This document shows positions 1-50,344 of a stretch of DNA of 64,000 nt, one piece after another. The translations under genes were made by a program, and so were the position numbers. Under the pieces are notes generated by a model. It ran no database searches. It saw only the letters and a program-made list of their open reading frames with translations, and was not told the origin of the DNA. Source of the stretch: Anaeramoeba ignava BMAN (taxonomy: Eukaryota; Protista; Anaeramoebae); assembly GCA_028826165.1 (NCBI GenBank), contig JAPDFW010000059.1:620001-684000 (forward strand), written 5' to 3'. Each line of letters starts with the position of its first letter. Positions within the stretch are counted from its first letter, which is position 1.

Positions 1-1329
1 GTTTATGGAATTGGTTCAAATCAATATGGTCAACTTGGTTTTGATTCTGAAACACTTGAAGGAACAGAAAAACTAATTTTAATGATGAAAAATGTTTCTA
101 AAATATTTTCAGGAATTGATTCAGCTCATATTTTTCTTTTAAATTCAAATCAAGAATTATTTGGATGTGGTGATAATAGTTCTAGTCAAATTGGATTAGG
201 AAAATCAAGAAAAGAAGAAGAAAGTATCCAAAAATTAACCAAAATCCAAAATATTCCAAAAGGTAAAATAATTTATATTCAATGTGGAAGTATTCATTCA
301 ATAATGTTAATTGAAAATGAAGATGAAAATCAAAATCCAAAAAGAAAACTTTATTCATGTGGAGATTATCTATATAATGGACTTGGCGAAGATGAAAATG
401 CTTATGAATTTACTGAAATCAAATCATCTTTATTTGAAAATGATGATAATATTATTGATTTTTCTGTTGGATATACTCATACTTTGATTTTAACATCAAA
501 AGGGAAACTAATAGTATTTGGAGATAATTTTTATGGTCAATTAGGAACTGGAGATACAAAAAATCAATTAATTCCAATTCAAATTGAACTTCCTAAATTA
601 AGATTTAATGAAAATATTTCTAATTATTATCTTTCTTGTGGTTTTGATAATTCATTTATTTATTATTCTCTTCCTTCTTTTTCCAATCTTGAAGAAGATT
701 TGATAAAATTATTTGAAAGAAAAGAATTTTGTAATATTTCATTTAAAACCGAAAATGGAGAAATAATCAAAGCTCATAAATTAATATTGAAATATAGATT
801 AAATCAAAATCAAAATGAAATTGAAAAACTTCAAAAAATTATTTCAAATAAATCAATTAAAGAATCAAATCAAATATTTGAAATGATTTATTCAAACAAT
901 TCCAAAATAAATCCAAAATTATATTCAGAAATTAAAGAAATTATAAATTCCAATGAAAAAATAGAAGAAACAATGAAAAGAATTTATTTAAATGAAAATG
1001 AAAATGAAAAAGATTTTATTATTGAAAAAAAAGAAAAACAATATAAATTTCCTAAATTAATATTAATAATGAGAAGTGAATTATATCGAGGAATGTTTTT
1101 ATCTGTTACAGATGATACTTCTAATAAAGTTACAGATTATAGTGAATTAAGTAATAAATCATTTCAATTATTTGAATATTGGATTTATTCAAATCAAATT
1201 AAAGATGAAATTGAAATTACACAAGAAATAATTGAAGAATTAGAAATTGGAATTGATTATTTTCAATTAAATCAAACAAATCCAAATTTATTAGATTTAT
1301 TAATTAACAAATTTAATAATCAAAATTAA
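1..1329 (+). CDS. RCC1-repeat beta-propeller + tandem BTB/POZ protein, copy 1 (5' end outside window)
   Basis: Frame open from base 1 (VYGIGSNQYGQLGF...). RCC1 motifs GDNFYGQLGTG, VGYTHTLIL; BTB motifs FCNISF..IKAHKLILKYR and DFII..FPKLILIMRSELYRGMF; near-identical to the next three ORFs. Confidence 0.92.
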   Translation, partial: VYGIGSNQYGQLGFDSETLEGTEKLILMMKNVSKIFSGIDSAHIFLLNSNQELFGCGDNSSSQIGLGKSRKEEESIQKLTKIQNIPKGKIIYIQCGSIHSIMLIENEDENQNPKRKLYSCGDYLYNGLGEDENAYEFTEIKSSLFENDDNIIDFSVGYTHTLILTSKGKLIVFGDNFYGQLGTGDTKNQLIPIQIELPKLRFNENISNYYLSCGFDNSFIYYSLPSFSNLEEDLIKLFERKEFCNISFKTENGEIIKAHKLILKYRLNQNQNEIEKLQKIISNKSIKESNQIFEMIYSNNSKINPKLYSEIKEIINSNEKIEETMKRIYLNENENEKDFIIEKKEKQYKFPKLILIMRSELYRGMFLSVTDDTSNKVTDYSELSNKSFQLFEYWIYSNQIKDEIEITQEIIEELEIGIDYFQLNQTNPNLLDLLINKFNNQN

Positions 1330-1742
1330 AATTAAAATTAAAATTAAAATTAAAATCAAAATTAAAATTAAAATTAAAATCAAAATTAAAATTAAAATTA
1401 AAATTAAAATTAAAATTAAAATTAAAATTAAAATTAAAATTAAAATTAAAATTAAAATTAAAATTAAAATTAAAATTAAAATCAAAATTAAAATCAAAAT
1501 CAAAATCAAAAATTAAAAATTAAAATCAAAATAAAAATTTAAATTAAAATTAAAATTAAAATTAAAATTTAAATTCCAATTAAAATCAAAATTAAAATCA
1601 AAATTAAAATTTAAAATTAAAATCAAAATCAAAATTAAAATTAAAATCAAAATTTAAATTCAAATCAAAATTAAAATTAAAATTAAAATTAAAATTAAAA
1701 TTAAAATTAAAATTAAAATTAAAATTAAAATTAAAATTAAAA
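1322..1742 (+). repeat. (AAAATT/AAAATC)n hexamer microsatellite spacer
   Basis: Directly visible hexamer array starting in the stop codon of copy 1. Confidence 0.95.
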
Positions 1743-1780
1743 AATCATTTTTTCATTTTTTCATTTTTTTCTTTTCAAAA

Positions 1781-3571
1781 ATGAATGAAATTTTATTTTT
1801 TGGAAGAAATAAATATCCAAAACTTATCAAAAATAAACCAGAAGATATAACAAAACCAATTCAATTTAAATTTGAAAATGAAAATGAAAATGAAAATGAA
1901 AATGAAAAACAAATTAAACAAATTTCAACAGGAAATTATTCAACAATTTTCCTTTTTAAAAATGGAAAAGCAATAGAATATTTAAATAAAAATGATTCAA
2001 AACAAAATCCTTCAAAAATCCAAATTGAAAATATTCAAAAAGTAACTGTTGGTTCTGATAATGAAACTATTTTAACAATAGAAGGAAATGTATTTGCCAA
2101 AGGAAAAGATATTAATCCAAATAATTCAAAAGAATTTATCAATATTTCATCATTAATTGAAGATAAAAATGATAGAATAATTCAAGATATTGTTTCTGGA
2201 GATGGTTCAATTTACTTATTAACTTCAAATCAAAATGTTTATGGAATTGGTTTAAATCAATATGGTCAACTTGGTTTTGATTCTGAAACACTTCCAAAAA
2301 CAGAAAAACCAATTTTAATGATGAAAAATGTTTCTAAAATATTTTCAGGAATTGATTCAGCTCATATTTTTCTTTTGAATTCAAATCAAGAATTATTTGG
2401 ATGTGGTGATAATAGTTCTAATCAACTTGGATTAGGAAAATCAAGAAAAAAAGAAGCAAGTATTCATAAATTAACCAAAATACAAAATATTCCAAAAGGT
2501 AAAATAATTGATATTCAATGTGGAAGTATTCATTCAATAATGTTAATTGAAAATGAAGATGAAAATCAAAATCCAAAAAGAAAACTTTATTCATGTGGAA
2601 ATTATCAATATAACGGACTTGGCAAAGAAGATGAAAATATTTATGAATTTACTGAAATCAAATCATCTTTATTTGAAAATGATGATGATAATATTCTTGA
2701 TTTTTCTGTTGGAAATTCTCATACTTTGATTTTAACTTCGAATTCAAAATTAATTGGATTTGGATACAATTATTATGGTCAATTAGGAACTGGAGATACA
2801 AAAAATCAATCAATTCTAATTCAAATTGAACTTCCTAAATTAAGATTTAATGAAAATATTTCTAATTATCATATTCTTTGTGGATTTAACAAATCATTTT
2901 TTTATTATTCTCTTCCTTCTTTTTCCAATCTTGAAGAAGATTTGATAAAATTATTTGAAAGAAAAGAATTTTGTGATATTTCATTTAAAACCGAAAATGG
3001 AGAAATAATTGAAACTCATAAATTAATATTGAAATATAGATTAAATCAAAATCAAAATGAAATTGAAAAACTTCAAGAAATTATTTCAAATAAATCAATT
3101 AAAGAATCAAATCAAATATTTGAAATGATTTATTCAAACAATTCCAAAATAAATCCAAAATTATATTCAGAAATTAAAGAAATTATAAATTCCAATGAAA
3201 AAATTGAAGAAACAATGAAAAGAATTTATTTAAATGAAAATGAAAATGAAAAAGATTTTATAATTGAAAGAAAAGAAAAACAATATAAATTTCCAAAATT
3301 AATATTAATAATGAGAAGTGAATTATATCGAGGAATGTTTTTATCTGTTACAGAAGATAAATCAAATAAAGTTACAGATTATAGTGAATTAAGTAATAAA
3401 TCATTTCAATTATTTGAATATTGGATTTATTCAAATCAAATTAAAGATGAAATTGAAATTACACAAGAAATAATTGAAGAATTAGAAAGAGGAATTGATT
3501 ATTTTCAATTAAATCAAACAAATCCAAATTTATTTGATTTATTAATTAACAAATTTAATAATCAAAATTAA
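1781..3571 (+). CDS. RCC1-repeat + BTB-BTB protein, copy 2 (596 aa, intronless)
   Basis: Complete ORF with repeated GxNxxGQLG and (S/C/V)GxxH RCC1 motifs followed by two BTB-like domains. Confidence 0.93.
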   Translation: MNEILFFGRNKYPKLIKNKPEDITKPIQFKFENENENENENEKQIKQISTGNYSTIFLFKNGKAIEYLNKNDSKQNPSKIQIENIQKVTVGSDNETILTIEGNVFAKGKDINPNNSKEFINISSLIEDKNDRIIQDIVSGDGSIYLLTSNQNVYGIGLNQYGQLGFDSETLPKTEKPILMMKNVSKIFSGIDSAHIFLLNSNQELFGCGDNSSNQLGLGKSRKKEASIHKLTKIQNIPKGKIIDIQCGSIHSIMLIENEDENQNPKRKLYSCGNYQYNGLGKEDENIYEFTEIKSSLFENDDDNILDFSVGNSHTLILTSNSKLIGFGYNYYGQLGTGDTKNQSILIQIELPKLRFNENISNYHILCGFNKSFFYYSLPSFSNLEEDLIKLFERKEFCDISFKTENGEIIETHKLILKYRLNQNQNEIEKLQEIISNKSIKESNQIFEMIYSNNSKINPKLYSEIKEIINSNEKIEETMKRIYLNENENEKDFIIERKEKQYKFPKLILIMRSELYRGMFLSVTEDKSNKVTDYSELSNKSFQLFEYWIYSNQIKDEIEITQEIIEELERGIDYFQLNQTNPNLFDLLINKFNNQN

Positions 3572-3862
3572 AAATAAAATTAAAATTAAAATCAAAATTA
3601 AAATTAAAATTAAAATTAAAAATTAAAATTAAAATTAAAATTAAAATTAAAATTAAAATCAAAATTAAAATTAAAATTAAAATTAAAATTAAAATCAAAA
3701 AAATTTCAAAATCAAAATTAAAATTAAAATTAAAATCAAAAATCAAAATTAAAATTAAAATTAAAATTAAAATTAAAATTAAAATCAAAATTAAAATTAA
3801 AATTTAAATTAAAATTAAAATTCAAAATCAAAATTAAAATCAAAATCAAAATTAAAAATTAA
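3564..3862 (+). repeat. (AAAATT)n hexamer spacer
   Basis: Visible array between copies 2 and 3. Confidence 0.95.
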
Positions 3863-3903
3863 AAAATCATTTTTCATTTTTTTCATTTTTTTTCTTTTCA
3901 AAA

Positions 3904-5673
3904 ATGAATGATTGTTTATTTTTTGGAAGAAATGAATTCCCAAAACTTATCAAAAATGAACCAGAAGATATAATAAAACCAATTCAATTTAAATTTGAAA
4001 ATGAAAAAGAAAAACAAATTAAACAAATTTCTTCATCAGGTTATTCAACAATTTTCCTTTTTAAAAATGGAAAAGCAATAGAATATTTAAATGAAAATGA
4101 TTCAAAACAAAATCCTGAAAAAATCCAAATTGAAGAAAATATTCAAAAAGTAACTGTTGGTTCTGATAATGAAGCTATTTTAACAAAAGAAGGAAATGTA
4201 TTTGCCAAAGGAAACAATATTAATCCAAAAAATACAAAAGAATTTATCAATATTTCATCATTAATTGAAGATAAAAATGATAGAATAATTCAAGACATTG
4301 TTACTGGAGATGGTTCAATTTACTTATTAACTTCAAATGAAAATGTTTATGGAATTGGTTTAAATCAATTTGGTCAAATTGGTTTTGATTCTAAAACACT
4401 TCCAAAAACAGAAAAACCAATTTTAATGATGAAAAATGTTTCTAAAATATTTTCAGGAATTGATTCAGCTCATATTTTTCTTTTAAATTCAAATCAAGAA
4501 TTATTTGGATGTGGTGATAATAGTTCTAGTCAAATTGGATTAGGAAAATCAAGAAAAAAAGAAAAAAAAATCAAGAAATTAACCAAAATACAAAATATTC
4601 CAAAAGGTAAAATAATTTATATTCAATGTGGAAGTATTCATTCAATAATGTTGATTGAAAATGAAAATCAAAATCAAAATCCAAAAAGAAAACTTTATTC
4701 ATGTGGAAATTATCAATATAACGGACTTGGCAAAGATGAAAATGCTTATGAATTTACTGAAATCAAATCATCTTTATTTGAAAATGATGATGATGATATT
4801 CTTGATTTTTCTGTTGGATATACTCATACTTTGATTTTAACATCCAAACCAAAACTAATAGTATTTGGAGATAATTTTTATGGTCAATTAGGAACTGGAG
4901 ATACAAAAAATCAATTAATTCCAATTCAAATTGAACTTCCTAAATTAAGATTTAATGAAAATATTTCTAATTATTATCTTTCTTGTGGTTTTGATAATTC
5001 ATTTATTTATTATTCTCTTCCTTCTTTTTCCAATCTTGAAGAAGATTTGATAAAATTATTTGAAAGAAAAGAATTTTGTAATATTTCATTTAAAACCGAA
5101 AATGGAGAAATAATCAAAGCTCATAAATTAATATTGAAATATAGATTAAATCAAAATCAAAATGAAATTGAAAAACTTCAAAAAATTATTTCAAATAAAT
5201 CAATTAAAGAATCAAATCAAATATTTGAAATGATTTATTCAAACAGAATAATAAATCCAAAATTATATTCAGAAATTAAAGAAATTATAAATTCCAATGA
5301 AAAAATAGAAGAAACAATGAAAAGAATTTATTTAAATGAAAATGAAAATGAAAAAGATTTTATTATTGAAAAAAAAGAAAAACAATATAAATTTCCTAAA
5401 TTAATATTAATAATGAGAAGTGAATTATATCGAGGAATGTTTTTATCTGTAACAGAAGATAAATCAAATAAAGTTACAGATTATAGTGAATTAAGTAATA
5501 AATCATTTCAAATATTTGAATATTGGATTTATTCAAATCAAATTAAAGATGGAATTCAAATTACACAAGAAATTATTGAAGAATTAGAAACAGGAATTGA
5601 TTATTTTCAATTAAATCAAACAAATCCAAATTTATTTGATTTATTAATTAACAAATTTAATAATCAAAATTAA
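3904..5673 (+). CDS. RCC1-repeat + BTB-BTB protein, copy 3 (589 aa, intronless)
   Basis: Complete ORF, paralogue of copy 2. Confidence 0.93.
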   Translation: MNDCLFFGRNEFPKLIKNEPEDIIKPIQFKFENEKEKQIKQISSSGYSTIFLFKNGKAIEYLNENDSKQNPEKIQIEENIQKVTVGSDNEAILTKEGNVFAKGNNINPKNTKEFINISSLIEDKNDRIIQDIVTGDGSIYLLTSNENVYGIGLNQFGQIGFDSKTLPKTEKPILMMKNVSKIFSGIDSAHIFLLNSNQELFGCGDNSSSQIGLGKSRKKEKKIKKLTKIQNIPKGKIIYIQCGSIHSIMLIENENQNQNPKRKLYSCGNYQYNGLGKDENAYEFTEIKSSLFENDDDDILDFSVGYTHTLILTSKPKLIVFGDNFYGQLGTGDTKNQLIPIQIELPKLRFNENISNYYLSCGFDNSFIYYSLPSFSNLEEDLIKLFERKEFCNISFKTENGEIIKAHKLILKYRLNQNQNEIEKLQKIISNKSIKESNQIFEMIYSNRIINPKLYSEIKEIINSNEKIEETMKRIYLNENENEKDFIIEKKEKQYKFPKLILIMRSELYRGMFLSVTEDKSNKVTDYSELSNKSFQIFEYWIYSNQIKDGIQITQEIIEELETGIDYFQLNQTNPNLFDLLINKFNNQN

Positions 5674-5860
5674 AATTAAAATTAAAATTAAAATTAAAAT
5701 TAAAATTAAAATTAAAATTAAAATTAAAATTAAAATTAAAATTAAAATTAAAATCAAAATTAAAATTAAAATTAAAATCAAAATTAAAATTAAAATTAAA
5801 ATTTAAAATCAAAATCAAAATCAAAATTAAAATTAAAATCAAAATTAAAATTTAAAAAAT
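5666..5860 (+). repeat. (AAAATT)n hexamer spacer
   Basis: Visible array between copies 3 and 4. Confidence 0.95.
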
Positions 5861-5895
5861 CAAAATTCATTTTTCATTTTTTTTCTTTTTCAAAA

Positions 5896-7674
5896 ATGAA
5901 TGAAATTATATTTTTTGGAAGAAATGAATCTCCAAAACTTATCAAAAATGAACCAGAAGATATAATAAAACCAATTCAATTTAAATTTGAAAATGAAAAT
6001 GAAAATGAAAAAGAAAAACAAATTAAACAAATTTCTTCATCAGGTTATTCAACAATTTTCCTTTTTAAAAATGGAAAAGCAATAGAATATTTAAGTGAAA
6101 ATGATTCAAAACAAAATCCTTCAAAAATCCAAATTGAAAATATTCAAAAACTAACTGTTGGTTATGATAATGAAGCTATTTTAACAAAAGAAGGAAATGT
6201 ATTTGCCAAAGGAAACAATATTAATCCAAAAAATACAAAAGAATTTATCAATATTTCATCATTAATTGAAGATAAAAATGATAGAATAATTCAAGACATT
6301 GTTACTGGAGATGGTTCAATTTATTTATTAACTTCAAATGAAAATGTTTATGGAATTGGTTTAAATCAATTTGGTCAAATTGGTTTTGATTCTAAAACAC
6401 TTCCAAAAACAGAAAAACCAATTTTAATAATGAAAAATGTTTCTAAAATATTTTCAGGAATTGATTCAGCTCATATTTTTCTTTTAAATTCAAATCAAGA
6501 ATTATTTGGATGTGGTGATAATAGTTCTAGTCAACTTGGATTAGGAAAATCAAGAAAAAAAGAAAAAAAAATCAAGAAATTAACCAAAATACAAAATATT
6601 CCAAAAGGTAAAATAATTTATATTCAATGTGGAAGTATTCATTCAATAATGTTGATTGAAAATGAAAATCAAAATCAAAATCCAAAAAGAAAACTTTATT
6701 CATGTGGAAATTATCAATATAACGGACTTGGCAAAGATGAAAATGCTTATGAATTTTCTGAAATCAAATCATCTTTATTTGAAAATGATGATGATGATAT
6801 TCTTGATTTTTCTGTTGGATATACTCATACTTTGATTTTAACATCCAAACCAAAACTAATAGTATTTGGAGATAATTTTTATGGTCAATTAGGAACTGGA
6901 GATACAAAAAATCAATTAATTCCAATTCAAATTGAACTTCCTAAATTAAGATTTAATGAAAATATTTCTAATTATTATCTTTCTTGTGGTTTTGATAATT
7001 CATTTATTTATTATTCTCTTCCTTCTTTTTCCAATCTTGAAGAAGATTTGATAAAATTATTTGAAAGAAAAGAATTTTGTAATATTTCATTTAAAACCGA
7101 AAATGGAGAAATAATCAAAGCTCATAAATTAATATTGAAATATAGATTAAATCAAAATCAAAATGAAATTGAAAAACTTCAAAAAATTATTTCAAATAAA
7201 TCAATTAAAGAATCAAATCAAATATTTGAAATGATTTATTCAAATAGAATAATAAATCCAAAATTATATTCTGAAATTAAAGAAATTATAAATTCCAATG
7301 AAAAAATAGAAGAAACAATGAAAAGAATTTATTTAAATGAAAATGAAAATGAAAAAGATTTTATTATTGAAAGAAAAGAAAAACAATATAAATTTCCTAA
7401 ATTAATATTAATAATGAGAAGTGAATTATATCGAGGAATGTTTTTATCTGTTACAAATGATAAATCAAATAAAGTTACAGATTATAGTGAATTAAGTAAT
7501 AAATCATTTCAAATATTTGAATATTGGATTTATTCAAATCAAATTAAAGATGAAATTCAAATTACACAAGAAATAATTGAAGAATTAGAAATTGGAATTG
7601 ATTATTTTCAATTAAATCAAACAAATCCAAATTTATTTGATTTATTAATTAACAAATTTAATAATCAAAATTAA
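5896..7674 (+). CDS. RCC1-repeat + BTB-BTB protein, copy 4 (592 aa, intronless)
   Basis: Complete ORF, closest to copy 3. Confidence 0.93.
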   Translation: MNEIIFFGRNESPKLIKNEPEDIIKPIQFKFENENENEKEKQIKQISSSGYSTIFLFKNGKAIEYLSENDSKQNPSKIQIENIQKLTVGYDNEAILTKEGNVFAKGNNINPKNTKEFINISSLIEDKNDRIIQDIVTGDGSIYLLTSNENVYGIGLNQFGQIGFDSKTLPKTEKPILIMKNVSKIFSGIDSAHIFLLNSNQELFGCGDNSSSQLGLGKSRKKEKKIKKLTKIQNIPKGKIIYIQCGSIHSIMLIENENQNQNPKRKLYSCGNYQYNGLGKDENAYEFSEIKSSLFENDDDDILDFSVGYTHTLILTSKPKLIVFGDNFYGQLGTGDTKNQLIPIQIELPKLRFNENISNYYLSCGFDNSFIYYSLPSFSNLEEDLIKLFERKEFCNISFKTENGEIIKAHKLILKYRLNQNQNEIEKLQKIISNKSIKESNQIFEMIYSNRIINPKLYSEIKEIINSNEKIEETMKRIYLNENENEKDFIIERKEKQYKFPKLILIMRSELYRGMFLSVTNDKSNKVTDYSELSNKSFQIFEYWIYSNQIKDEIQITQEIIEELEIGIDYFQLNQTNPNLFDLLINKFNNQN

Positions 7675-7988: not shown

Positions 7989-10900
7989 ATGACTGAAGAA
8001 CAAATTATTGAGAAAGGAAATTTTTTGGTTCAAAATCGTAAATTTCATACAGCAACAACAAAATCTTCTAATTGGAAAGAATATTTTATTGAACTTCACG
8101 CAAATTGTTTGAAATATTACTTAGTTTCTGATAAGGTTATTATTTATTTTTTTTTTCAAATTTTTAATTAAAAATCAACATCAACAACATTTTGTCAACA
8201 AAATATTCAATTAAAAATTAAAATCAAATTTAAAATATAAAACTAATATTAAAATTAAAATTAAAATTAAAATTAAAATTAAAATTAAAATTAAAATTAA
8301 AATTAAAAATTAAAATTAAAATTAAAAATTAAAATTAAAATTAAAATTAAAAATTAAAATTAAAATTTAATATTAAAATTAAAAATTAAAATTAAAATTA
8401 AAATTAAAATTAAAATTAAAAATATAAAAATAAATGAAAATTAAAATTTAAAATTAAAATTAAAATTAAAATATTAAAATTAAAATTAAAATTAAAATTA
8501 AAATTAAAATCAGAATTAAAATTAAAATTAAAATTAAAAATTTAAATTAAAATTAAAATTAAAATTAAAATTAAAATTAAAATTAAAATTAAAATTAAAA
8601 TTAAAATTAAAATTAAAATTAAAATTAAAATTAAAATTAAAATTAAAATTAAAACTAATATTAAAATTAAAATTAAAATTAAAATTAAAATTAAAATTTA
8701 ATATTAAAATTAAAATTAAAATCAGAATGAAAATTAAAATTCATTTATAATATTAAAATTTGAAAAAAAAAAAAAGACTCATAAATTAAAAGGAACATTC
8801 GAGCTTGAAGATTGCTTTGTTATTCTTCCACAAATACCTCAGAAATATATTCTTAAAATATCAAGAAAAAATGTCAAACCAATTTTTCTTCAATTTTCAA
8901 CAACAGAAGAAATGGAAAAATGGCAAAAATTAATTGAACAAACAATTGCAAAACTTGTGAATTTCATTTTTTAAAACAAAACCTAAAATAAAATCATTTC
9001 AAATAATAATAATAATATTTATTAAAAAAAAACAATTTGATTTTAGAAACAAGAAAAATATTTAAATAGTTTAGAAAATAAAAACAAGAAAAAACAAAGT
9101 TTAAGATCTGGATGGCTAAGAAAAAAAGGGAAGAAAACTTTATTCAGACAAAAATGGCGACAAAGATTTTTTGATTTATCTCCTGATCATTCAAAAGGAA
9201 CATATGCTTTAAAATATTACAAAGATGAAGAAATGGTTCGAATATTTAATTTATTTTTTTAATTAAATTTAATTTTAATTTTAATTTTAATTTTAATTTA
9301 TTTTTTTTTAGGAAGGACATCCGTTAGGAATAATTTATTTATCAAATATTTCAAGTATTAAAGAAACTAAATTTACTAATGAACCTTTTGGATTTCAAAT
9401 CAATATTGAAAAAAGAGAATATCAATTAGCTGCTGGAAGTAAAGAAGAATTAACAAAATGGATTACTATTATTAATGAGAATCTTAATAAAAAAGTTGAA
9501 ATGAAAGAAGAACCTAAAAAGGATGTTCCTAAAAGCAAACCAAAAGAAACGAAAGATATAAAAGATATAAAAGATAATGAAGATATAAAAGAAACAAAAG
9601 ATAATCAAGAAAATCAAGAAAATCAAGAAAATCAAGAAAATCAAGAAACAAAAGATCTAAAAGATAATCAAGAAACAAAAGAAAATCAAGAAACAAAAGA
9701 TCTAAAAGATAATCAAGAAACAAAAGAAAATCAAGAAAATCAAGAGCCAAAAGATATAAAAGATAACCAAGAAACAAAAGATAATCAAGAAAATCAAGAA
9801 AATCAAGAAACAAAAGATATAAAAGATAATCAAGAAAATCAAGAAAATCAAGAAAATCAAGAAAATCAAGAAAATCAAGAAAATCAAGAAAATCAAGAAA
9901 ATCAAGAAAATCAAGAGCCAAAAGATCTAAAAGAAAATCAAGAAACAAAAGAAAATCAAGAAAATCAAGAAACAAAAGATCTAAAAGAAAACAAAAGATA
10001 TAAAAAATATAAAAGATAATCAAGAAAATCAAGAAAATCAAGAAACAAAAGAAAATCAAGAAACAAAAGATAATCAAGAAAATCAAGAAAATCAAGAAAA
10101 TCAAGAAAATCAAGAAAATCAAGAAAATCAAGAAAATCAAGAAACAAAAGAAAATCAAGAACCAAAAGATATAAAAGATCTAAAAGATAATCAAGAAAAT
10201 CAAGAAAATCAAGAAACAGAAGATAATCAAGAAAATCAAGAAAATCAAGAAAATCAAGAAAATCAAGAAAATCAAGAAAATCAAGAAAATCAAGAAACAA
10301 AAGATCTAAAAGAAAATCAAGAAAATCAAGAAAATCAAGAAAATCAAGAGCCAAAAGATATAAAAGAAAATCAAGAAAATCAAGAAAATCAAGAAAATCA
10401 AGAAACAAAAGATAATCAAGAAAATCAAGAAAATCAAGAAAATCAAGAAACTGAAGATATAAAAGAAAATCAAGAAACTGAAGATATAAAAGAAAATCAA
10501 GAAACTGAAGATAATCAAGAAAATCAAGATAATGAAGAAACAAAAGATAATCAAGAAAATCAAGAAACAGAAGATATAAAAGAAAATCAAGATAATGAAG
10601 ATAATGAAGATAATCAAGAAAATCAAGAAAATCAAGAAAATCAAGATAATGAAGATAATCAAGAAAATCAAGAAACAGAAGATATAAAAGAAACAGAAAT
10701 AAAAGAAACAGAAATAAAAGAAAATGATGAAAATCAAGAAACAGAAGATATCCCCGAAACAGAAATAAAAGAAACAGAAATAAAAGAAACAGAAATAAAA
10801 GAAACAGAAATAAAAGAAACAGAAATAAAAGAAACAGAAATAAAAGAAAATGATGATAAAGAAACAGAAATAAAAGAAAATGAAAATGATAAAGAAAATG

Positions 10901-15803: not shown

Positions 15804-18800
15804 TCAAAGTAAATTTATTTGATAATCTTTTTTTAATGTTTCTCTTGCAATATTTTCAAGATTTTCAATTAAATCATTCTTTTCTCCTTTTTTTGCTTTT
15901 GTTTCTGGATTTTTCACATTAAAATAAATTTCTTTTCCAAAAAGTTTTCTAGCAAAAGTAATTGATAAAGGATTTCTTTTTTGTTTTGTTTTATATTAAA
16001 AAAAAAAAGAGTGAAAAATTTTTTAAATTAAATAATTAATATATTATTTACTGTAAAATCATTTGAGAAACATTTGAATTTTTATTAAATTCACTATGAC
16101 AAATTGATGAATCTTGAGTAAAATCTTCTAGATTTGTTGAATTGGGAATTGTTTGTGTAATTCTTGATGTTTCATCATCAAACATTAAAAAATTATAATT
16201 TTCTCCATTTGTTAACTAAAAAAAAGTAATTAAATAATTTTGATTTTCTTTCTTAAAGTTTTTAATTTAAAATACTGTTGATTTTTTTTCAAGTAATTTT
16301 TTGGATTGTGGATTTTTAAATAAATTTTCAAGTTCTCGACTCATTTTTAAAAGTTTTGTTTTCAAATTATTCTATATATATATATTAATAATAAAATGTA
16401 TAATTTATCAACATTTTTCTTATTAAATTCAAAAATTTTATTTTGTTTTTAGAAATACAATTTTATCAATTGTTTGTTGATCATTCATTATATCAATTTC
16501 TGTAATAACTGCTATTGTGATTAAATCAAATCTAGTCATTCTTAATCCAAAATATTTTCCATCAGGGTAATTTTGAGTATAAACCTGAAGCAAACAAATT
16601 AATATTTAATTTAAATCAATTTTTAAATCGATATTAAAATTAATTAAATCAATTTTTTTTTGAAAATACTTTTGAAAGTTCTATTTGAGCACGGTTTAAA
16701 TTTGTTTCACTTGAAAAATTTTGAATTTTTGAAGAATCAAATTCTATAGATGTAATATTTTCCATTTCAATTCGATTTTCATTTATATTTAGATTTTTAA
16801 TATCATTTATATTTTGAAATTCATTTTGATTTTGATTTTCATTTTGATTTTGATTTTCATTTTGATTTTGATTTTCATTTAGATTTTGATTTATATTTTG
16901 ATTTATATTTTGATTTTGATTTTGATTTTGATTTTGATTTTGATTTTGATTTTGATTTTGATTTTGATTTTGATTTTGATTTATATTTTCATTTTGATTT
17001 ATATTTTGATTTTCATTTTCATTTTGATTTTGATTTTGATTTTGATTTTGATTTTGATTTTGATTTTGATTTTGATTTTGATTTATATTTTGATTTATAT
17101 TTTGATTTTCATTTTCATTTTGATTTTGATTTTGATTTTCATTTTGATTTTGATTTATATTTTGATTTTCATTTTGATTTTCAATTTTATTTTGATTTTG
17201 GTTTTGATTTATATTTTGATTTTGGTTTTGATTTATATTTTGATTTATATTTTGATTTTGATTTTGATTTTGATTTTGATTTATATTTTGATTTTGATTT
17301 TGATTTTGATTTTGATTTTCATTTTCATTTTGATTTTCAATTTGATTTTGATTTATATTTTGATTTTGATTTTGATTTTGATTTTGATTTTGATTTATAT
17401 TTTGATTTATATTTTGATTTTGATTTATATTTTGATTTTGATTTTGATTTTGATTTTGATTTTGATTTTGATTTTCATTTTCATTTTGATTTATATTTTG
17501 ATTTTGATTTTGATTTTGATTTTGATTTTCAATTTGATTTTGATTTTGATTTTTATTTTCATTTTGATTTTCATTTTGATTTTCAATTTTATTTTGATTT
17601 TGGTTTTGATTTATATTTTGATTTTGGTTTTGATTTATATTTTGATTTTGATTTTGATTTTGATTTTGATTTTGATTTTGATTTTGATTTTGATTTTGAT
17701 TTTGATTTTGATTTTGATTTTGATTTTGATTTTGATTTTCATTTTCATTTTGATTTATATTTTGATTTTGATTTTGATTTTGATTTATATTTTGATTTAT
17801 ATTTTGATTTTGATTTATATTTTGATTTTGATTTTGATTTTGATTTTGATTTATATTTTGGTTTTCATTTTGATTTATATTTTGATTTTGATTTATATTT
17901 TGATTTTGATTTTGATTTTGATTTTGATTTTGATTTTGATTTTGATTTATATTTTGATTTATATTTTGATTTATATTTTGATTTTGATTTTGATTTTGAT
18001 TTATATTTTGATTTTGATTTTGATTTTGATTTTCATTTTGATTTATATTTTGATTTTCATTTTGATTTTGATTTTGATTTTGATTTATATTTTGATTTTG
18101 ATTTTGATTTTGATTTATATTTTGATTTATATTTTCATTTTCATTTTCATTTTGATTTATATTTTGATTTATATTTTCATTTTCATTTTGATTTATATTT
18201 TCATTTTGATTTATATTTTGATTTATATTTTGATTTTGATTTTGATTTTGGTTTTGATTTTGATTTTATATTTTGATTTTGATTTTGATTTTGATTTTGA
18301 TTTTGATTTTGATTTTGATTTATATTTTGATTTTGATTTTGATTTTGATTTATATTTTGATTTTGATTTTGATTTTGATTTTGGTTTATATTTTCATTTT
18401 GATTTATATTTTGATTTATATTTTGATTTTGATTTTGATTTTGGTTTTGATTTTGATTTTGATTTTGATTTTGATTTTGATTTTCATTTTGATTTTGATT
18501 TTGATTTTCATTTTGATTTTGATTTTCATTTTGATTTTGATTTTCATTTTGATTTTGATTTTCATTTTGATTTTGATTTTCATTTTGATTTTGATTTTCA
18601 TTTTCAATTTCATTTATATTTTCATTTTCATTTATATTTTCATTTTCATTTATATTTTCAATTTCATTTTGATTTTGATTTTGATTTTGATTTTCATTTT
18701 GATTTTGATTTTCAATTTTATTTTGATTTTCATTTTGATTTATATTTTGATTTATATTTTGATTTTCATTTATATTTTGATTTTGATTTTCATTTTCATT

Positions 18801-20532
18801 TTGATTTTCATTTTCAATTTCATTTTGATTTATATTTTGATTTTGATTTATATTTTGATTTTGATTTATATTTTCATTTTGATTTATATTTTGATTTTGA
18901 TTTTGATTTATATTTTGATTTTGATTTTGATTTTGGTTTTGATTTTGATTTATATTTTGATTTTGATTTTCATTTTGATTTATATTTTGATTTTGATTTA
19001 TATTTTGATTTTGATTGTGATTTTGATTTTGATTTTGATTTTGATTTTGATTTATATTTTGATTGTTGTTATTTTCTAAAGGAATATTTTCTTCATTTGA
19101 AAATTCTTTTTGAAGTAATTTTTCATTAAAAATAAAAACAGGAACATTTTCAAGAGTTTCAGAATTTTGTAATATTTTCCCAATATTAGATAATGAATTT
19201 GTTGAAAATTTAGTTGAAAGGAAAGTTTTTGGAATATCATAATCATTTAAAGAGTTATCAATATTATTTGTTTGAAATGTTCTCCATTTATCATATTCAT
19301 CTTGTTTATAAAGTAATCTATAATAAATCCATCGAGTAATTTCCAAATCAAGATCTGTGCAAAGAACATTTGTTTGATAAAAAATAACTCCTCCAAAAAA
19401 ATTATCCCAATTTCTAATTTCTTGTAAAATTTGAGAAGCAAGAATGAAATAACGATTGAAAGTCTAAAAATTGATTCCAAAAGAAAATATTTAAAAAAAA
19501 TATTAATATTAATATTATTATTATTAAACTACAGGTGGTAATTCTAAATATGGAAGAATAGGAAAAGATGGAAAAAGATGTAAATTTGGTTCAAATAATT
19601 TTTCTGGTTGTATAATAAAAGGAATTAATTCTTCACCAGCTCTTGAAATAAATGTTTTGAATTCTTCGTCTGATCCTTGAGCCTTCTGATTTTTATTTTA
19701 ATTTTAATTTTGATTTTAATTTTGATTTTAATTTTGATTTTAATTTTGATTTTAATTTTAATTTTGATTTTAAATTTTAATTTTGATTTTAATTTTAAAT
19801 TTAAATTTTAATTTAAGTTTTGATTTTAATTTTAATTTTTATATTAATTTTAAGTTTTGATTTTAAATTTTAATTTTAATTTTAATTTTGATTTTAATTT
19901 TGATTTTAATTTTGATTTTGATTTAAATTTTAATTTTAAATTTTAATTTTAATTTTAATTTTGATTTTGATTTTTATTTTGATTTAAATTTTAATTTAAA
20001 TTTTAATTTTAATTTTAATTTTAATTTTAATTTTAATTTTAATTTTAATTTTGATTTTAATTTTGATTTTGATTTTAATTTTAATTTTAATTTTGATTTA
20101 AATTTTAATTTCTAATTCAGTTTTAATTTTAAAAACCATTTCAAGATGATCAAAAGAATGATTATAAAATTGAAAACATTTCAAAAAATCATCATGTTTT
20201 TTCATCAAAGAAGAATCAGTAGTTTTATCTTTTTGACCACAAAGAACAGTAACAATATTACCAAGTTTTTTGATACTCAATTTGATATGAGAAAGATTAA
20301 TAATTTCAAGTTTACGTTTTGCAAAGAGGCTCATGAAATGTTCTGTAGCAGTAATAATACCAGCAAGCATTTCTTGATTATTTGGTGGCATTTCACTTGG
20401 ATAAAAAAATATTACTCTTTCTGGATAATCCTCATTATCATCTGAAACATCCTGTTCATCATCTTCACGAAACCAAAAGTAACAACCTTCTTGAAGTAAT
20501 TTAGAATCGAATTCTGGTTCTGGTTCAAACAT
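15804..20532 (-). CDS. HPS4: HPS4-like tri-longin protein (BLOC-3 Rab32/38 GEF subunit); multi-exon (20532-20137, 19685-19533, 19463-~16670, then several short exons to stop at 15804); one frameshift near 18265
   Basis: Exon 1 IFFYPSEMPPNNQEMLAG..LSHIKLSIK..FQFYN matches HPS4 longin 1. Exon 3 ASQILQ..GGVIFYQTNVLCTDL matches longin 2. The last exon NPLSITFARKLFGKEIYF...ARETLKKDYQINLL* resembles the HPS4 C-terminus (..VNLL). CCZ1 is the less likely alternative. Confidence 0.82.
16800..19065 (-). repeat. ~2.3 kb coding hexamer repeat (AATCAA/AATGAA/AATATA; N-Q/N-E/N-I) inside HPS4
   Basis: Entered and left in frame with unique HPS4 sequence, apart from one indel. Confidence 0.85.
19690..20130 (-). 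repeat. Intronic (AAAATT/AAAATC)n array in HPS4 intron 1
   Basis: Reads (TTTTAA)n on + strand within intron 19686-20136. Confidence 0.9.
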
Positions 20533-25197: not shown

Positions 25198-27147
25198 TCA
25201 TAAATTTTTCATTTTATTTTTTCGAATTTTGGATAATTTTTTGTTGAAATAATCAAGTGAATAAATTTGGAAATATTCACTAATATTATTATTCATTTCT
25301 TCAATAACTTCAAATGGTAAATCATTTTCTAATTCATCAAAATAAAGATAATGAATAAAAGCTTGGATTGTTTCAAATTTCCGATTAGAATAATCATGAA
25401 CTTGATTTGAATCATCTTTAACATGAAGAAACATTCCTCTAAATAATTGACTTCTTGCAGCAATAATAATTTTATGAGTTTTGATTGGTTTACCTTCTGC
25501 AATTATTGAAAAATCCTTTGTTTGATCTTGAGTAAATAATTTTTGAAGATCTCTTTTCAATCCAGAACAAAATGATTTGGATTCAATCACTTTTTCTTCA
25601 AGTCCAAGTTTCTTTAAAATTTGAAGTGATTTATTTTCCAATTTTCCCCAATAAATCCATTGGAGAATCGAATCAACATCTTCTTTGGGATGAATTTTTA
25701 GAATAGTCTTTAAATTTCCAATTAATTCAAATCCAATTCGAAGTTGCAAAATTAAAGAATGCACAACTTTTTTCCCTTGTTTATATTCAATTTCATCATC
25801 ACAAAATTCTTCTCTTTCCAGTAACATTGCAAATTCAGAACTGAGTGATGTATTATTTCGAGAAAAAACAAACGAATTCAATGGTCCACAATGAACCACA
25901 AGTTCGTTTTGTTTGTCCAATCCTCTAATTTCCAATTTAGTCGGAATTGTTACCATACTGTTCTGAATTCCGAGTTGGCCATATCTATTTGAGCCCCACA
26001 CATAAATTTCATTCGCTTCATTCAAAGCAATGGTATGTACTCTTCCGCAAGAAATTTGCTTAATATTTTCATTTTTTAAAGTCGGAATTTTTTGGAACAT
26101 ACAAATATCTTTTGATAATCCAATTCCATTTTCAAAAGAACCAGTTGAATAAACTCTTCCAATCCCTTTTTCATTAGCTAGTAAAACTGAAAAATAGTAT
26201 CCACATTGGATATCTATCACTTCATCCACTTCTTGGGGAAGAGAAACTAATGTAGGTGAGTTTGTTGTTTGGAAATCATTTACTCCAAGTTGCCCATATG
26301 TATTTAATCCTGCTCCATATAATTTGTTATCCTTTGAAACAAAGAAATATCGATAAACTTGATTTCCTGAAAAAATTTTTTTGACATTTTTGGAAATTGT
26401 TTTCCATCTTAATTTATTTTGTTCTTGAACTGAAAAAGTGGAAGGCAAAAAAAATTGGAAAACGGATTGGACTGAAAAGTAAAAAAAAAATTTTTTTAAA
26501 AACAAACAAACAAACAAACAAACAAGTATTTGTTTTGATTATTCTTACGATTATCATCAATAGATTCAAAATTTTGAAATCCAAAAGAATAAAGAGCACC
26601 TTCTTCAATTAAAACAAAATATTGATCAGCTCCACAAGCAATATCAATAACATTCTCCTTAATAAAGGAATCAATGATTTGAGGATATAAATATTTTGCA
26701 TTTTCTTTTGTTAATAAATCTTTTCCCCAAAAATAAACATTTCCATCTTCAGATAATCCTAAAAAAATTAATTCTCCAGCACTTATTTTTGAGAAGTTGA
26801 TTTTCTTCTTTTTTTGTTGAGATTTTGATTCATCTTGTGAATTTATTTCTTTTGGAAAATTTCCAAAAATACAAAATTCTTTATTAGAACCAATTAAAGT
26901 TGTTTCTGTTTTACAAGAACTAATATAATTTACAAATCCATCATCAAAAACAGAAAAAGGTTGAGGTTTTTTAATTTGATTTAGATTTGAAACAAATGGA
27001 AGTTGTTTATATTGATTATCTCTATTAAATTTTTGAATTTTGATTATTTTTTTATATTTTGTTTGTTTGTTCCAATAAAAGAATAAAAATAAATAAATAA
27101 ATAAATAAATTTATAAAAACTAACCCCCAAGTAAAATTATTATTCAT
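25198..27147 (-). CDS. Divergent RCC1-repeat + BTB-BTB protein with ~2 introns (~27125-27022 and ~26520-26473)
   Basis: MNNNFTWG|DNQYKQL..ISAGENYFLGLSEDGNVYFWG..IACG..; GLNTYGQLG, ISCGRVHTIAL, GSNRYGQLG; BTB KDFSIIAEGKPIKTHKIIIAARSQLFRGMF. Exact second donor is ambiguous inside a GTTT repeat. Confidence 0.85.
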
Positions 27148-33300: not shown

Positions 33301-36300
33301 CCCTCTTTCTCATAAATCCTTGGAATCAATTTTCAAAAAATCTTGCAAATTATATCAAAATATTCGTTTATTTACTTCTCAATTATGTGGAACGGGGAAA
33401 AGTTATCAAATAAGAAAAGAATGTTTTCTATTAAAAAACCAGAAATATTTCCATATTGTACTTACAAAAGAATCACCATTAGAAATTATCCAAAAAATAA
33501 ATTTTTTCAGATCCAAAAATTCAAACCCTCAAAACAAATCCAATTTCTTCCATATCGAATTGCCTTTCTTTCCAAAATTGAGAACCTTAGATTTTCTTTG
33601 GGCATTAACGATGTGGAATCTAATTGAAACCAAAAATAATATTTCAAGTATCAATAACTCAATTTGTACTTTTGCTAATAATAATGAAATATTAATGTTT
33701 GAAATCCCAAGTAACCAAAATCCAGACTCTGAAAATGGATTGAATCATTTCCCGCCGTTGAAGTATTTTCAAAACAAAGAATGCAAAGTGAGTTCAAAAG
33801 AATTTGGTTTCAAAAAATATGTTTTCAATCAAAAACAATTTCAAATTGAAAAACAAACAGATGAAGAATTGAAAAAATTTATGATAAATGTTGAAGTGTT
33901 TCAAAAGAAAAGATCAAAAGATGATCAAAAAGAGTCTAAACTTAAGAAAAAAGAATTGTTTTTCAAATTTGTCAAAAAATATCTTTCACAAAAATTACCT
34001 GACAAAATTTTCACTTTTAGGATGATTTCAGATTTTTGTTCATTTCTGAGAAATAAAAATAGTTTACTATTAGTTGATCCCAAAATCAAACAACAGTTGC
34101 AGTCAAAAATTAATCAAAATGAAAATAGCAAAACCACAAAAAAAGACAAGGGAACGATCGAAAATTTATAGCTCAATATGTTGATCTTTATTTGTATTCA
34201 ATTACAAATCTTGTTGCACCTTCACTTAAATGGAAAACAAGTAAAATGACAAATTATTCTGAATTGGAAAATCTATTTTTTTTATTAAAAGAAAAAATTA
34301 CTTGGAATCAAAGAACGTTTTGCTTTCCAATAATATCAAAACAAAAGAAAGTGAATAAATACAAATTTAAGATTATCAGCAACAAAGAAATGAAGTCATT
34401 ATTTTTTAGGGATTTCCAAGCATTTATTGATTCTCAAGAATATTTTTCTTTTGAAGAAATGATACCAACACAATCCAAAGATGGTATTTCTTTATCAAAT
34501 TTTTACAAATTTGCAACCAATTTAACTCAGAAGATATCAAAATCAATAAGACAAAAGTTAACCAGCAAAATAACAAGACAAAAGAACTTGGCAATTTCCT
34601 TACATATAATAACGCACTAAAGATTTTCCATATCAAATTCAGGTTTTTTTCGAATATTCCTGTAATTTTTGTTGATGGAAATGATTACGAAAAGATATTT
34701 TTAATCAAGTATTTGGTTGAAGTTGTAATGAACCAAAAATTGATAATTTTTTTAATCAATCCAAACACATCAGAACAAGATATTATTCAATTTATAAATC
34801 AACAAGAAGAAAATACTCATTTAACTATATTATTCCATGAGATTAATACTGCTTCAAAAGGATGCATCATCTTATTAAAGGAAATACTACTAGATCGCTC
34901 TTGTAATGGAGTGCCTTTGGATCCCAAAATTAATTTATTGGCTTCATTGAAAACTTTCTCACAAAAGGAATTTAAAGAACTTCAAACTAAAATTCAAATC
35001 CAAAAAGAAATTGATGATGCAAATGATAATAATAGCAATAGCAATAACATGGACAAAGAACTTAAAAACAAGAAAATAAATGAAACCATTATTTATCCTC
35101 GCTTGATTCCTGATTCATTTTATGATGAAATTTTTGATTTTGGATCACTGGAAAATAACGAAGAAACGAAATATATTTCGCTAATTGTGGAAAGAAAACT
35201 CAAAGAAATTGAAGAAGCATATCTCCAAAAGTCACTATTTTTCAATTTCTCTAATGACAAAAAATATATTTTTGAGATCATAAACTACTCACGTAATTAT
35301 ATTCAAAAAGAACGAGAAAAAGGTTTTTATTTGTTTTATGACGTGATTTATTTTGTTCGAGTGCTTTCATGGATTTTATCAAATCAATCAGCAGAGACAT
35401 TGATAGAGCAATCTAATCCTTCAATAAGATTGAAATTATCTATTCCAATTTCATTATATTTTGTTTATGCTTCAAATTTAATTGGGAACGACAGAAATGC
35501 ATTTTTATCAGGAATAGAAAATGACTTAATTAAAGAAAATATCCAAGAAACTATAAATAAAATTTCAAATAGAGCAATTCAATTATTCAATATTAATTTT
35601 TCAAAGAGAAATATTGCTGAAACTCTTCCATTAAAAGAAAATATATTATTCATTCTAATTTCATTTTTTACAAGAATACCTTTATTGATAAATGGCAAAT
35701 CGAAAGGTAAAATATCACAAAAAAAATTATTAAATTTCCAAAAAGAAAACTAAATAATAAATATATTTTTTTTCCCTTTATTTTCCTCATTATAAACTAG
35801 GAACTTCTCGATCAATAGCATTTCAAATTATTTTGGATTCTTTTAACAGAAATTCAAACCAAAAAAACAAATTTACAAAATTAGAAATAATTGAAATTCA
35901 TTGTTCTGAATTAATATCATCTTCTTTTCTGAAACAAAAATTTGAAGATGCTAAAAAATTGGAAAACCAACAAAACATAATTCCTGTTATAATTTTTAAG
36001 GAAGTTGAGAATTTAAAGAAAGAAGCTTTTTGTGTTCTCCATTCAGAAATCCGGAAAAATTTATCTGAAGAAATAATTTCGGAAAATTCAAATTTGTGGA
36101 TTGTTTTATTTTCAAATTTGGATGATGAATTTGATATTCCAGCAGTTGTTTTAAATGAAAGAAAATTAAATGAAAAAGAGTTAGAAATGATAACAACAGA
36201 GATTTTAGGATCTCTTTCTAAAGAATTTCCTGAAAAGTATCAGCAAGATTTTGTGGCAGAGTTTCTGCTAATTCTTAATAACAAAAAAGAGAAGAGAAAA

Positions 36301-42300: not shown

Positions 42301-42312
42301 TTCAAAATCTAA
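27396..42312 (+). CDS. RNF213: Giant RNF213/mysterin-like AAA+ protein (~4900 aa), intron 35707-35800, five single-base frameshifts (~28036, ~30376, ~31005, ~34140, ~34530-34580)
   Basis: Ordered RNF213-type blocks: LFTSQLCGTGKSYQI; LTYNNALKIFHIKFRFFSNIPVI; LFHEINT..LKEILLDRSCNGVPL; IFDFGSL..EETKYI; IAETLPLKENI..RIPLLING; SRHLMLV; IKNCISEGKLLVL...LYPFLYDLLHQIY; NPNFRLVIV; RHFEKQYV; RZ-like C..H..C..C; VRDMDPKCYRIVFLLMH. Confidence 0.8.
28860..30410 (+). repeat. Coding N/D/E low-complexity tract with 4 copies of a DSDTD(Y/T)DTDSDMENQNN unit
   Basis: In frame in ORF 27940-30378; units near 28990, 29150, 29310 and 29535. Confidence 0.9.
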
Positions 42313-48661: not shown

Positions 48662-50344
48662 TTAATTTTGATTATTAAATTTGTTAATTAATAAATCAAA
48701 TAAATTTGGATTTGTTTGATTTAATTGAAAATAATCAATTCCAATTTGAATTTCATCAATTATTTCTTGTGTAATTTCAATTCCATCTTTAATTTGATTT
48801 GAATAAATCCAATATTCAAATATTTGAAATGATTTATTACTTAATTCACTATAATCTGTAACTTTATTAGATTTATCATTTGTTACAGATAAAAACATTC
48901 CTCGATATAATTCACTTCTCATTATTAATATTAATTTTGGAAATTTATATTGTTTTTCTTTTCTTTCAATTATAAAATCTTTTTCATTTTCATTTTCATT
49001 TTCATTTAAATAAATTCTTTTCATTGTTTCTTCAATTTTTTCATTTGAATTTATAATTTCTTTAATTTCAGAATATAATTTTGGATTTATTATTCTGTTT
49101 GAATAAATCATTTCAAATATTTGATTTGATTCTTTAATTGATTTTTTTGAAATAATTTCTTGAAGTTTTTCATTTTGATTTTGATTTAATCTATATTTCA
49201 ATATTAATTTATGAGCTTCAATTATTTCTCCATTTTCGGTTTTAAATGAAATATCACAAAATTCTTTTCTTTCAAATAATTTTATCAAATCTTCTTCAAG
49301 ATTGGAAAAAGGAGAAAGAAAAGGAGAATAATAAAGAAATGATCTATCAAATCCACAATGAACATGATAATTGGAAATATTTTCATTAAATCTTAATTTA
49401 GGAAGTTCAATTTGAATTGGAATTAATTTTTAATTTTGATTTGGAAGTTAAAATCAAAGTATGACATTTCCAACAGAAAAATCAAGAATATTATCATCAT
49501 TTTCAAATAAAGATGATTTGATTTCAGTAAATTCAATTGATCCACATGAATAAAGTTTTCTTTTTGCATTTTCATCTTCAATCAACATTATTGTATAAGC
49601 ATATCCAGATTTAATATCAATTATTTTACCTTTTGGAATATTTTGGATTTTGGTTAATTTTCTAATTTTTGTTTCTTCTTTTCTTGATTCTCCTAATCCA
49701 AGTTGACCATCGTCATTATTTCCGCATACAACTAATTCTTGGTTTGAATTTAAAAGAAAAACATGAGCTGAAGTATTTCCTGAAAATATTTTAGAAACAT
49801 TTTTCATCATTAAAATTGGTTTTTCTGTATTTTTAAGTGTTTCAGAATCAAAACTAAGTTGGCTATATAGATTCGAACCAATTCCATAAGCATTTTGATT
49901 TGAAGTTAATAAATAAATTGAATTTCTTCCAGAAACAATATCTTGAATTATTCTATCATTTGTATCTTTAATTAATGATGAAATATTGATAAATTCTTTT
50001 GGATTTTTTGGATTAATATCTTCTCCTTTGGCAAATACATTTCCTTCTTTTGTTAAAATAGCTTCATTATGATAACCAACAGTTACTTTTTGAATATTTT
50101 CTTCAATTTGGATTTTTTCAAGATTTTGTTTTGAATTTCTTTCATTTAAATATTCTATTGCTTTTCCATTTTTAAAAAGGAAAATTGTTGAATAATTTCC
50201 TGATGAAATTTGTTTAATTTGTTTTTCATTTTCATTTTCATTTTCATTTTCAAATTTAAATTGAATTGGTTTTGTTATTATATTTGGTTTATTTTTAATA
50301 AGTTTTGGATAATTATTTAAACCAAAAAATATAATTTCATTCAT
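48662..50344 (-). pseudogene. RCC1-BTB-BTB copy A, disrupted (internal deletions ~49538 and ~49430, frameshift)
   Basis: ORFs 49454-50344 and 48662-49288 are the two halves of one family member; the NGLG loop and the last GxNxxGQLGTGD motif are missing. Confidence 0.8.

Follow-up and report, generated by a model that had tools for sequence, protein, structure and literature searches.

What does a unicellular eukaryote do with gene after gene for almost the same protein, when the copies differ chiefly in a few short loops? The question is raised by a stretch of 64,000 nucleotides from Anaeramoeba ignava BMAN (GenBank assembly GCA_028826165.1, 42.8 Mb in 147 contigs; contig JAPDFW010000059.1, here C1, positions 620001-684000 of the forward strand), which is referred to below as the window and which opens with a tandem row of genes whose products combine a seven-bladed RCC1-like propeller with two BTB domains C-terminal to it. 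A. ignava is a free-living anaerobic metamonad harbouring sulfate-reducing symbionts (PMC11550330), and the genes belong to a family of more than a thousand members that is specific to it. The answer that we consider probable is that the family constitutes a germline-encoded library of binders whose BTB tail serves for docking on Cullin-3 (CUL3). Each copy would carry a binding surface of its own on one face of the propeller, to which every blade contributes the x-x of a G-x-x-H motif, the start of a G-x-N-x-x-G motif and a few residues preceding its first strand; the whole would most likely function as a library of proteins that bind their targets inside the cell. Purifying selection, probably aided by gene conversion or unequal crossing-over, holds the BTB tail, the opposite face and the strands constant, and the tail, as homology with RCBTB1 and IBTK suggests, would most likely dock the bound target on the single CUL3 ligase for ubiquitination. 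The diversified binding repertoire in this proposal is well supported, and its Cullin-3 and immune-like parts are plausible.

The gene family and its predicted fold

Positions 1-7674 of the window hold four plus-strand genes arranged head to tail (W1-W4; Table 1), each with matches to the RCC1-like propeller families (PF25390, PF00415) followed by BTB (PF00651), and mutually 90-97% identical. Three further copies (M1-M3) lie on the minus strand. The DNA is AT-rich, with 16-20% G+C (guanine plus cytosine) across the family copies, and the nearest protein matches to the window copies are all from Anaeramoeba ignava. RCC1-like/BTB matches or sequence are present in all seven copies that the initial annotation, made from this stretch alone, had assigned to the family (four at 1-7674, three at 48662-53700): three are intact, one has a frameshifted N-terminus and three are pseudogenes. 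Over its first ~20 codons W1 is out of frame and has a TGA stop; it is probably a pseudogene or the product of an assembly indel. M1-M3 are pseudogenes, with several frameshifting deletions each of 1-62 nucleotides (nt), chiefly in the propeller half; M1 retains an open frame through its BTB half. An in-frame (GAAAAT)n tract at 1873-1908 and 5988-6017 encodes ENENEN and differs in length among copies; it looks like a frameshift hot spot because a shift of one base makes it read KMKMK, as it does in W1 and M2, whose N-termini are broken.

The plan of the protein, with two BTB domains after a propeller, is recognised by profile scores and by structure prediction alike. PF00415 is matched at 78.9-86.7 bits (cut-off 21.7) and, in W4, PF25390 at 221 bits (cut-off 150); both BTB units pass the PF00651 cut-off of 20.5 bits, BTB1 at 24.2 and BTB2 at 28.4. 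BTB1 is shortened, covering positions 3-80 of the 110 in the profile, and BTB2 is a complete core BTB. The AlphaFold2 model of the 592-residue W4 protein has a mean predicted local distance difference test score (pLDDT) of 89 and 26 strands; its propeller by Foldseek resembles HERC2 RLD1/2 (target template modelling score, TM, 0.80-0.81) and RCC1 (0.74-0.76), with RPGR also matched. Modelled separately, the C-terminal 215-residue tail (pLDDT 92.6, predicted TM score, pTM, 0.87) matches the BTB domains of BCL6, Miz1, KBTBD4 and KLHL26. Its best matches are single-chain tethered POZ heterodimers, Miz1-BCL6 and Miz1-Nac1, over ~230 columns at a modest TM of 0.50-0.60, which suggests that BTB1 and BTB2 pack together as an intramolecular pseudo-dimer.

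A whole-assembly search gave 2,806 first-look candidates, from which 74 scored full-length matches at 82-100% identity were obtained. The extent of the family is better seen with two signatures, whose reversed control patterns gave 0 matches: the BTB-half signature, a 24-nt word allowed at most 2 mismatches, is found 1,357 times in the genome and the propeller-half signature 1,120 times. The family thus has roughly 1,100-1,360 copies genome-wide, many of them in short tandem arrays, and tandem runs are evident among the matches. Perhaps two thirds of the copies are full length, a rough estimate from signature spacing on contig C1, where ~28 of the 43 BTB signatures are accompanied by a propeller signature at the usual distance of 1,143-1,194 nt.

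RCC1+BTB proteins in general are widespread among eukaryotes. The nearest divergent relatives of the present family, at 35-57% identity, are all from A. ignava, and the closest protein of another species, among the 30 matches whose source was looked up, is from A. flamelloides with only 35% identity; the expansion is therefore specific to A. ignava. What would be sought in a repertoire, a lineage-specific tandem expansion with birth and death of copies, is present, and the expanded family foreseen in the initial annotation is borne out by the signature counts and their species specificity. One divergent relative with two BTB regions lies within the window itself, outside the hypervariable family; its motifs are of the ordinary G-x-N-x-Y-G-Q-L-G kind, and its N-terminal blades fall outside the open frame at 25198-26517. 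It is possibly of an older type, ancestral to the hypervariable family.

Variable positions, selection and composition

The distribution of variation was followed in an alignment of 69 distinct intact coding sequences, with open frames of ~590 codons, from the 70 loci that represent the best copies. Column entropy is at least 2.5 bits in 26 columns, at least 2 bits in 37 and below 1 bit in 495. Thirteen of the 37 variable positions are in the hairpin between strands 2 and 3 (the x-x of G-x-x-H), 15 follow the fourth strand, where they are the x positions of G-x-N-x-x-G, and 9 precede the first strand; the strands, the two opposite-face loop classes and the BTB half contain none at the same threshold. 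All 37 would share one propeller face, because the three loop connections are at the same strand end of a four-stranded antiparallel blade, an assignment made by strand order in the predicted model and not by distances. The loop windows were drawn after the data had been seen and are descriptive, not a blind test; the pattern is nonetheless plainly regular across all seven blades. The entropy profile is repeated in 67 other annotated paralogues (r = 0.97), with 33 of the top 37 positions in common.

Between copies, some 37-50 residues are close to randomised. The strings of variable residues are unique in 69 of 69 sequences; the median pair differs at 30 of 37 sites, near the 79% expected from independent draws, and mutual information among variable sites is almost nil, neighbours included. 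The loop pattern had been read from the window, where the initial annotation described two variable loops per blade, listed variants of their motifs and counted scatter over both faces and the core against its reading. Every listed variant is present, the two loops correspond to the G-x-x-H hairpin and the G-x-N-x-x-G loop, and 37 of 37 positions belong to loop classes of the same face rather than to both faces or the core. The loop variety that it reported is real but was drawn mostly from the pseudogenes M1-M3, W1-W4 being recent duplicates that differ at few variable sites; the pattern inferred from the window nevertheless holds in intact genes genome-wide, where it goes far past what chance would give.

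In the variable codons, nucleotide diversity reaches 0.64, 0.52 and 0.34 at the first, second and third positions, compared with 0.043, 0.023 and 0.055 in the framework and 0.143 at four-fold degenerate sites. Rates were estimated from 26 phylogenetically independent sister pairs, with the site classes defined each time from the other 67 sequences. Non-synonymous divergence (dN) at the variable codons is 0.57 and synonymous divergence (dS) in the framework is 0.07. Even against the inflated local dS of the variable codons themselves dN/dS is 1.95, and it is 0.36 in the framework (0.43 in the propeller, 0.27 in the BTB half), all by counting methods, not recombination-aware codon models. In all 26 pairs the proportion of non-synonymous differences (pN) at variable sites exceeds that of synonymous differences over the genome copies (pS). 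When each site is taken separately in a binomial test on these pairs, amino-acid differences are in significant excess after Bonferroni correction at 50 sites, of which 46 are in the propeller; 16 sites stay significant when the neutral rate is doubled. The loop dN/dS above 1 that the initial annotation had predicted is therefore obtained by counting, and dN at these sites also lies above framework dS. The scaffold and the BTB half are under purifying selection, and the site pattern, rates and composition fit diversifying selection on a binding surface. The contrast that would mark a repertoire, a non-synonymous excess in the loops of one surface on a purified scaffold, is thus found, with the excess from counting and the face from strand topology.

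The residues at the variable sites are binder-like rather than those expected from AT drift. Tyr makes up 15.4% of the loop residues (3.8% in the framework), Asn 14.8%, Asp 9.6%, Ser 8.3% and Arg 4.4%, and the family-wide count agrees with the richness in these five residues that had been noted in the window. Tyr, Asp, Arg, Trp and His are enriched, and Ile and Leu are strongly depleted relative to AT-biased mutation, Ile reaching 2.1% where ~24% is expected. Neutral decay of exposed loops is therefore a poor explanation.

The BTB tail, the origin of the diversity and competing explanations

If the BTB tail docks on CUL3 the genome should offer a partner, and among ~eight cullin loci there is one clear CUL3 orthologue (protein P0269 of contig C58, 736 amino acids, aa). 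In the PDB human CUL3 matches it best (401 bits, vs 343 for CUL4B), its closest relatives are plant and dictyostelid CUL3 proteins, and it carries the SFEELY..Y helix that is invariant in 56 CUL3 proteins. This is the helix by which CUL3 contacts BTB domains, as in the SPOP and KLHL complexes. Other cullin loci were tried as CUL3 and rejected, L071, L072, L075 and L076 as CUL4-like and L074 as CUL1/2-like. Co-folding of the BTB-BTB tail with the N-terminal 380 residues of CUL3 gave 0.64 and one unrelated control reached 0.47, so that the co-fold counts neither for nor against binding.

A number of observations weigh against a binder library with a CUL3-docking tail, and the first group of these concerns the tail. 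The models have no 3-box or BACK helices after BTB2, since the protein ends at most ~10 residues past the last BTB helix (in W4 the helix ends at residue 591 of 592). The missing 3-box weakens assignment as a CUL3 adaptor without excluding it, because not all CUL3 adaptors have one. At the phi-x-E site W4 has T-N-D opposite L-K-E of KBTBD4; the family consensus is V-T-E-D, which a one-residue shift brings to V-T-E, and the acidic residue varies among E, N and D between copies, so that the motif is only approximately kept. From the analysis as a whole, the chances that the family is coupled to CUL3 appear about evenly balanced.

It is a possibility of some weight, less probable than the docking proposal, that the binder repertoire is as described and that the BTB-BTB pseudo-dimer is a constant stalk, an oligomerisation module or a dock for some other effector. 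The absence of a 3-box, the shortened BTB1 and the best structural matches, which are tethered POZ heterodimers, all favour this alternative. Against it, BTB2 has a complete core that aligns with KBTBD4, annotated as a Kelch repeat and BTB protein, and another KBTBD member has been solved in a CUL3 ligase (CRL3) complex (8h38). The tail is also the most conserved part of the protein, as expected of a region with a shared partner. Finally, two proteins with this order of domains, RCBTB1 and IBTK, have been reported as CUL3 adaptors (PMC4974088, PMC4447969).

The second group of adverse observations concerns expression and the integrity of the copies. None of 120 full-length and 99 short family matches is a EukProt transcriptome record, vs two divergent relatives that do have such records; this is weak negative evidence, because highly similar paralogues assemble badly from short reads. 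A search for sequencing runs gave no RNA run; the coding parts are covered only by short collapsed contigs from a single small run (X8), which carry no information on expression. The proteomic data of the Anaeramoeba intein paper are from A. flamelloides, not A. ignava. Four of the seven window copies (W1, M1-M3) are broken, and about one third of the BTB signatures on contig C1 have no properly spaced propeller signature. To these is added the method by which the variable face was assigned, i.e. strand order in a model.

The third group concerns the tempo and mode of change. The three youngest sister pairs (pS 0.014-0.021; W3/W4 is one) differ at only 2-3 of the 37 variable sites, about the synonymous rate, and older pairs are saturated at these sites even where the framework is only 2-3% diverged; a steady high rate does not fit both. 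Framework sites show recombination in the pairwise homoplasy index (PHI) test (observed 0.389, permuted 0.423 ± 0.012, p = 0.006), the differences among W1-W4 are clustered in blocks, and the FastTree gene tree is star-like, with 84% of its length in terminal branches. Homogenisation of the framework, or an old burst, could therefore explain the high apparent rate instead of ongoing fast change. In one history an old burst of diversification may have been followed by stasis; in the other, conversion may continually homogenise the framework with selection keeping the loop differences. Both involve selection for loop diversity. Of the description "rapidly diversifying" given in the initial annotation, the excess of loop amino-acid change over the synonymous rate stands; the rapidity does not extend to the three youngest pairs, which have no excess at variable sites.

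Several of these facts would also suit a selfish or neutral amplified repeat, largely unexpressed, whose loops are relaxed exposed residues that merely seem fast through gene conversion elsewhere. Whether tandem or dispersed, the copies are all bracketed by (AAAATT)n microsatellite and a T-rich leader (34-72 units per array in the window; the flanks of loci L005-L016 are alike), and the final codons of the genes run into the array. Such flanks around each copy would favour unequal exchange and may drive unequal crossing-over and array growth. Pseudogenes are many, as are truncated gene models of the family in the protein database; the lack of a transcriptome record among the EukProt family matches, the framework recombination, the block-wise differences of W1-W4 and the unexceptional young duplicates point in the same direction. 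We nevertheless think a mere repeat unlikely. Among the best copies 69 of 70 are intact over their ~590 codons, the framework and BTB half are constrained as given above, and diversity at the variable codons is four to five times that at four-fold sites; the composition is far from AT drift, with Ile and Leu depleted and residues of G/C-containing codons enriched. Conversion without selection would, moreover, homogenise the loops too.

Programmed, site-directed diversification, by targeted mutagenesis or templated conversion at the loop codons, would account for variability sharply confined to homologous positions of every blade beside invariant Gly, Asn and His anchors, and for variable sites that are near-independent and saturated on a framework only 2-5% diverged. 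It is very improbable given the 2-3 differences, at about the synonymous rate, between the youngest duplicates; besides, no reverse transcriptase, template repeat or other candidate machinery was seen next to the genes, whose flanks are microsatellite only, and codon usage at the variable sites bears no single-base signature. A programmed mutator is thus both unneeded and unsupported by the young pairs. We give equally little credence to the propellers as exchange factors or regulators of the expanded Anaeramoeba small GTPases, with loops tuned to different GTPases, for although source annotations name members after RCC1-type exchange factors such as claret and large expansions of Rab and TBC are described in the genome paper (PMC11550330), more than 1,000 near-random surfaces far exceed any GTPase repertoire and the variable positions have no conserved catalytic wedge or fixed subset of contacts.

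To return to the germline library with its CUL3-docking tail, a more specific form of it is a working system of intracellular recognition, in which several hundred intact propeller "paratopes" would each capture a different foreign protein and pass it to the one CUL3 ligase for destruction. The targets could be proteins of the sulfate-reducing symbionts, of prey bacteria, or of viruses or mobile elements. We put this forward tentatively, as appreciably less likely than the library itself; a role against microbes, viruses or symbionts is conjecture.

Other features of the window and known systems

The coordinates of the family copies, their flanking elements and the other features of the window are collected in Table 1. 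The T-rich leader, ~45 nt long, conserved and common to copies on many contigs, is a candidate core promoter or 5' untranslated region, and it appears to resemble promoters of the initiator type in related metamonads. An (AATTAA)n array of ~90 units (8209-8760) is situated downstream, after the end of the tandem row. Scans of the window for tRNA genes and against Rfam gave no matches.

Table 1. Features of the window (positions in the window; strand given where recorded)
Feature	Position	Strand	Remarks
W1, partial RCC1-BTB-BTB copy	1-1329	+	Start upstream of the window at C1:619581
W2, intact 596-aa gene	1781-3571	+	Seven-blade RCC1-like propeller, BTB1, BTB2
W3, intact 589-aa gene	3904-5673	+	97% identity to W4
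W4, intact 592-aa gene, reference copy	5896-7674	+	Propeller 1-378, BTB1 ~387-458, BTB2 ~490-584
M1, pseudogene	48662-50344	-	Propeller half frameshifted by deletions of 5, 31, 1 and 53 nt
M2, pseudogene	50389-52030	-	11-nt insertion, 62- and 59-nt deletions (frameshifting); one in-frame stop
M3, pseudogene	52070-53700	-	Ten frameshifting deletions
(AAAATT)n spacer, ~72 units, between W1 and W2	1309-1742	+	
(AAAATT)n spacer, ~52 units	3551-3864	+	
(AAAATT)n spacer, ~34 units	5653-5856	+	
T-rich leader with TCATT repeats	1745-1780; also 3867-3903, 5857-5895	+	Directly 5' of ATG
Divergent relative, propeller blades and two BTB regions	25198-26517	-	30% identity to W4; outside the hypervariable family
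Alpha-actinin-like gene	53834-56821	-	Two calponin-homology domains, spectrin repeats, EF-hands; ~41% G+C, far above surroundings
Low-complexity stretch	16000-20000		16% G+C; strong strand skew (GC ~+0.4, AT ~-0.37); overlapping open frames on the two strands
Two very large open frames, 1,035 and 2,159 aa	31064-34171, 35833-42312	+	No Pfam match at 1e-5
Open frames, 398 and 870 aa	12003-15676	-	32-37% G+C island; no Pfam match
Leucine carboxyl methyltransferase gene (PF04072)	62035-63126	+	

If the family members are expressed binders, one protist would be spending ~5% of its DNA (roughly 2-2.4 of 42.8 Mb) on a combinatorial library for recognition, a scale comparable to that of vertebrate and plant immune gene families, on a fold not known for such use. 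The finding would bear on how symbiont-bearing unicellular eukaryotes distinguish partners, prey and parasites, and would provide a natural compact cytosolic scaffold with ~40 tolerant surface positions. Should the recognition reading also be true, a unicellular eukaryote would have an antibody-like repertoire on the RCC1 fold. In the available parts of the main and supplementary text of the genome paper (PMC11550330) RCC1 is unmentioned, and BTB and cullin occur only as PANTHER family names in a table, a CUL3-adapter BTB family included; a few "regulator of chromosome condensation" or "claret" entries stand among the lateral-transfer candidates in what is available of its supplementary table. 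The family is mentioned neither in the Anaeramoeba intein paper nor in the 2026 A. pumila preprint.

Known systems share one or another feature with the A. ignava family. In UVR8, the plant RCC1-fold photoreceptor, the same G-x-x-H hairpin positions are functional, as the Trp and Arg of GWRHT in blades 5-7 (PMC5108777), but UVR8 is encoded by one conserved gene, the residues at these positions are fixed and there is no BTB domain. Closest in plan are RCBTB1/RCBTB2 and IBTK, which likewise have a propeller followed by BTB, and the A. ignava family is grouped with them by source annotations and by Atlas look-alike clusters; the PANTHER name is "BTK-binding protein-related". These are, however, conserved genes that number one to a few in a genome and lack a hypervariable face, unlike the more than 1,000 copies of the present family, which are over 80% identical and have ~40 randomised surface positions. 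Identity to relatives outside the family is ~30-40%.

The nematode MATH-BTB and F-box adaptor expansions are said, by Thomas in 2006, to be under positive selection. They are likewise lineage-specific tandem expansions of cullin adaptors with many pseudogenes, with adaptive change in the substrate-binding domain and a conserved cullin-docking part (see PMC8120010). In A. ignava, by contrast, it is the RCC1 propeller that varies, not MATH or FTH, the copies are several-fold more numerous and resemble each other much more closely outside the variable sites, and they belong to a free-living protist. The fungal NOD-like receptors (NLR) with WD40 repeats (HNWD, HET-E/D/R; PMC1805685, PMC2873952) likewise have a beta-propeller with a conserved framework and a few hypervariable positions on its interaction face, shaped by diversifying selection together with concerted evolution and recombination. 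However, the variation in the fungi is between the repeats of a few genes and is carried on a WD40 fold attached to a NACHT domain, whereas in A. ignava it is between more than 1,000 genes and is carried on an RCC1 fold joined to BTB.

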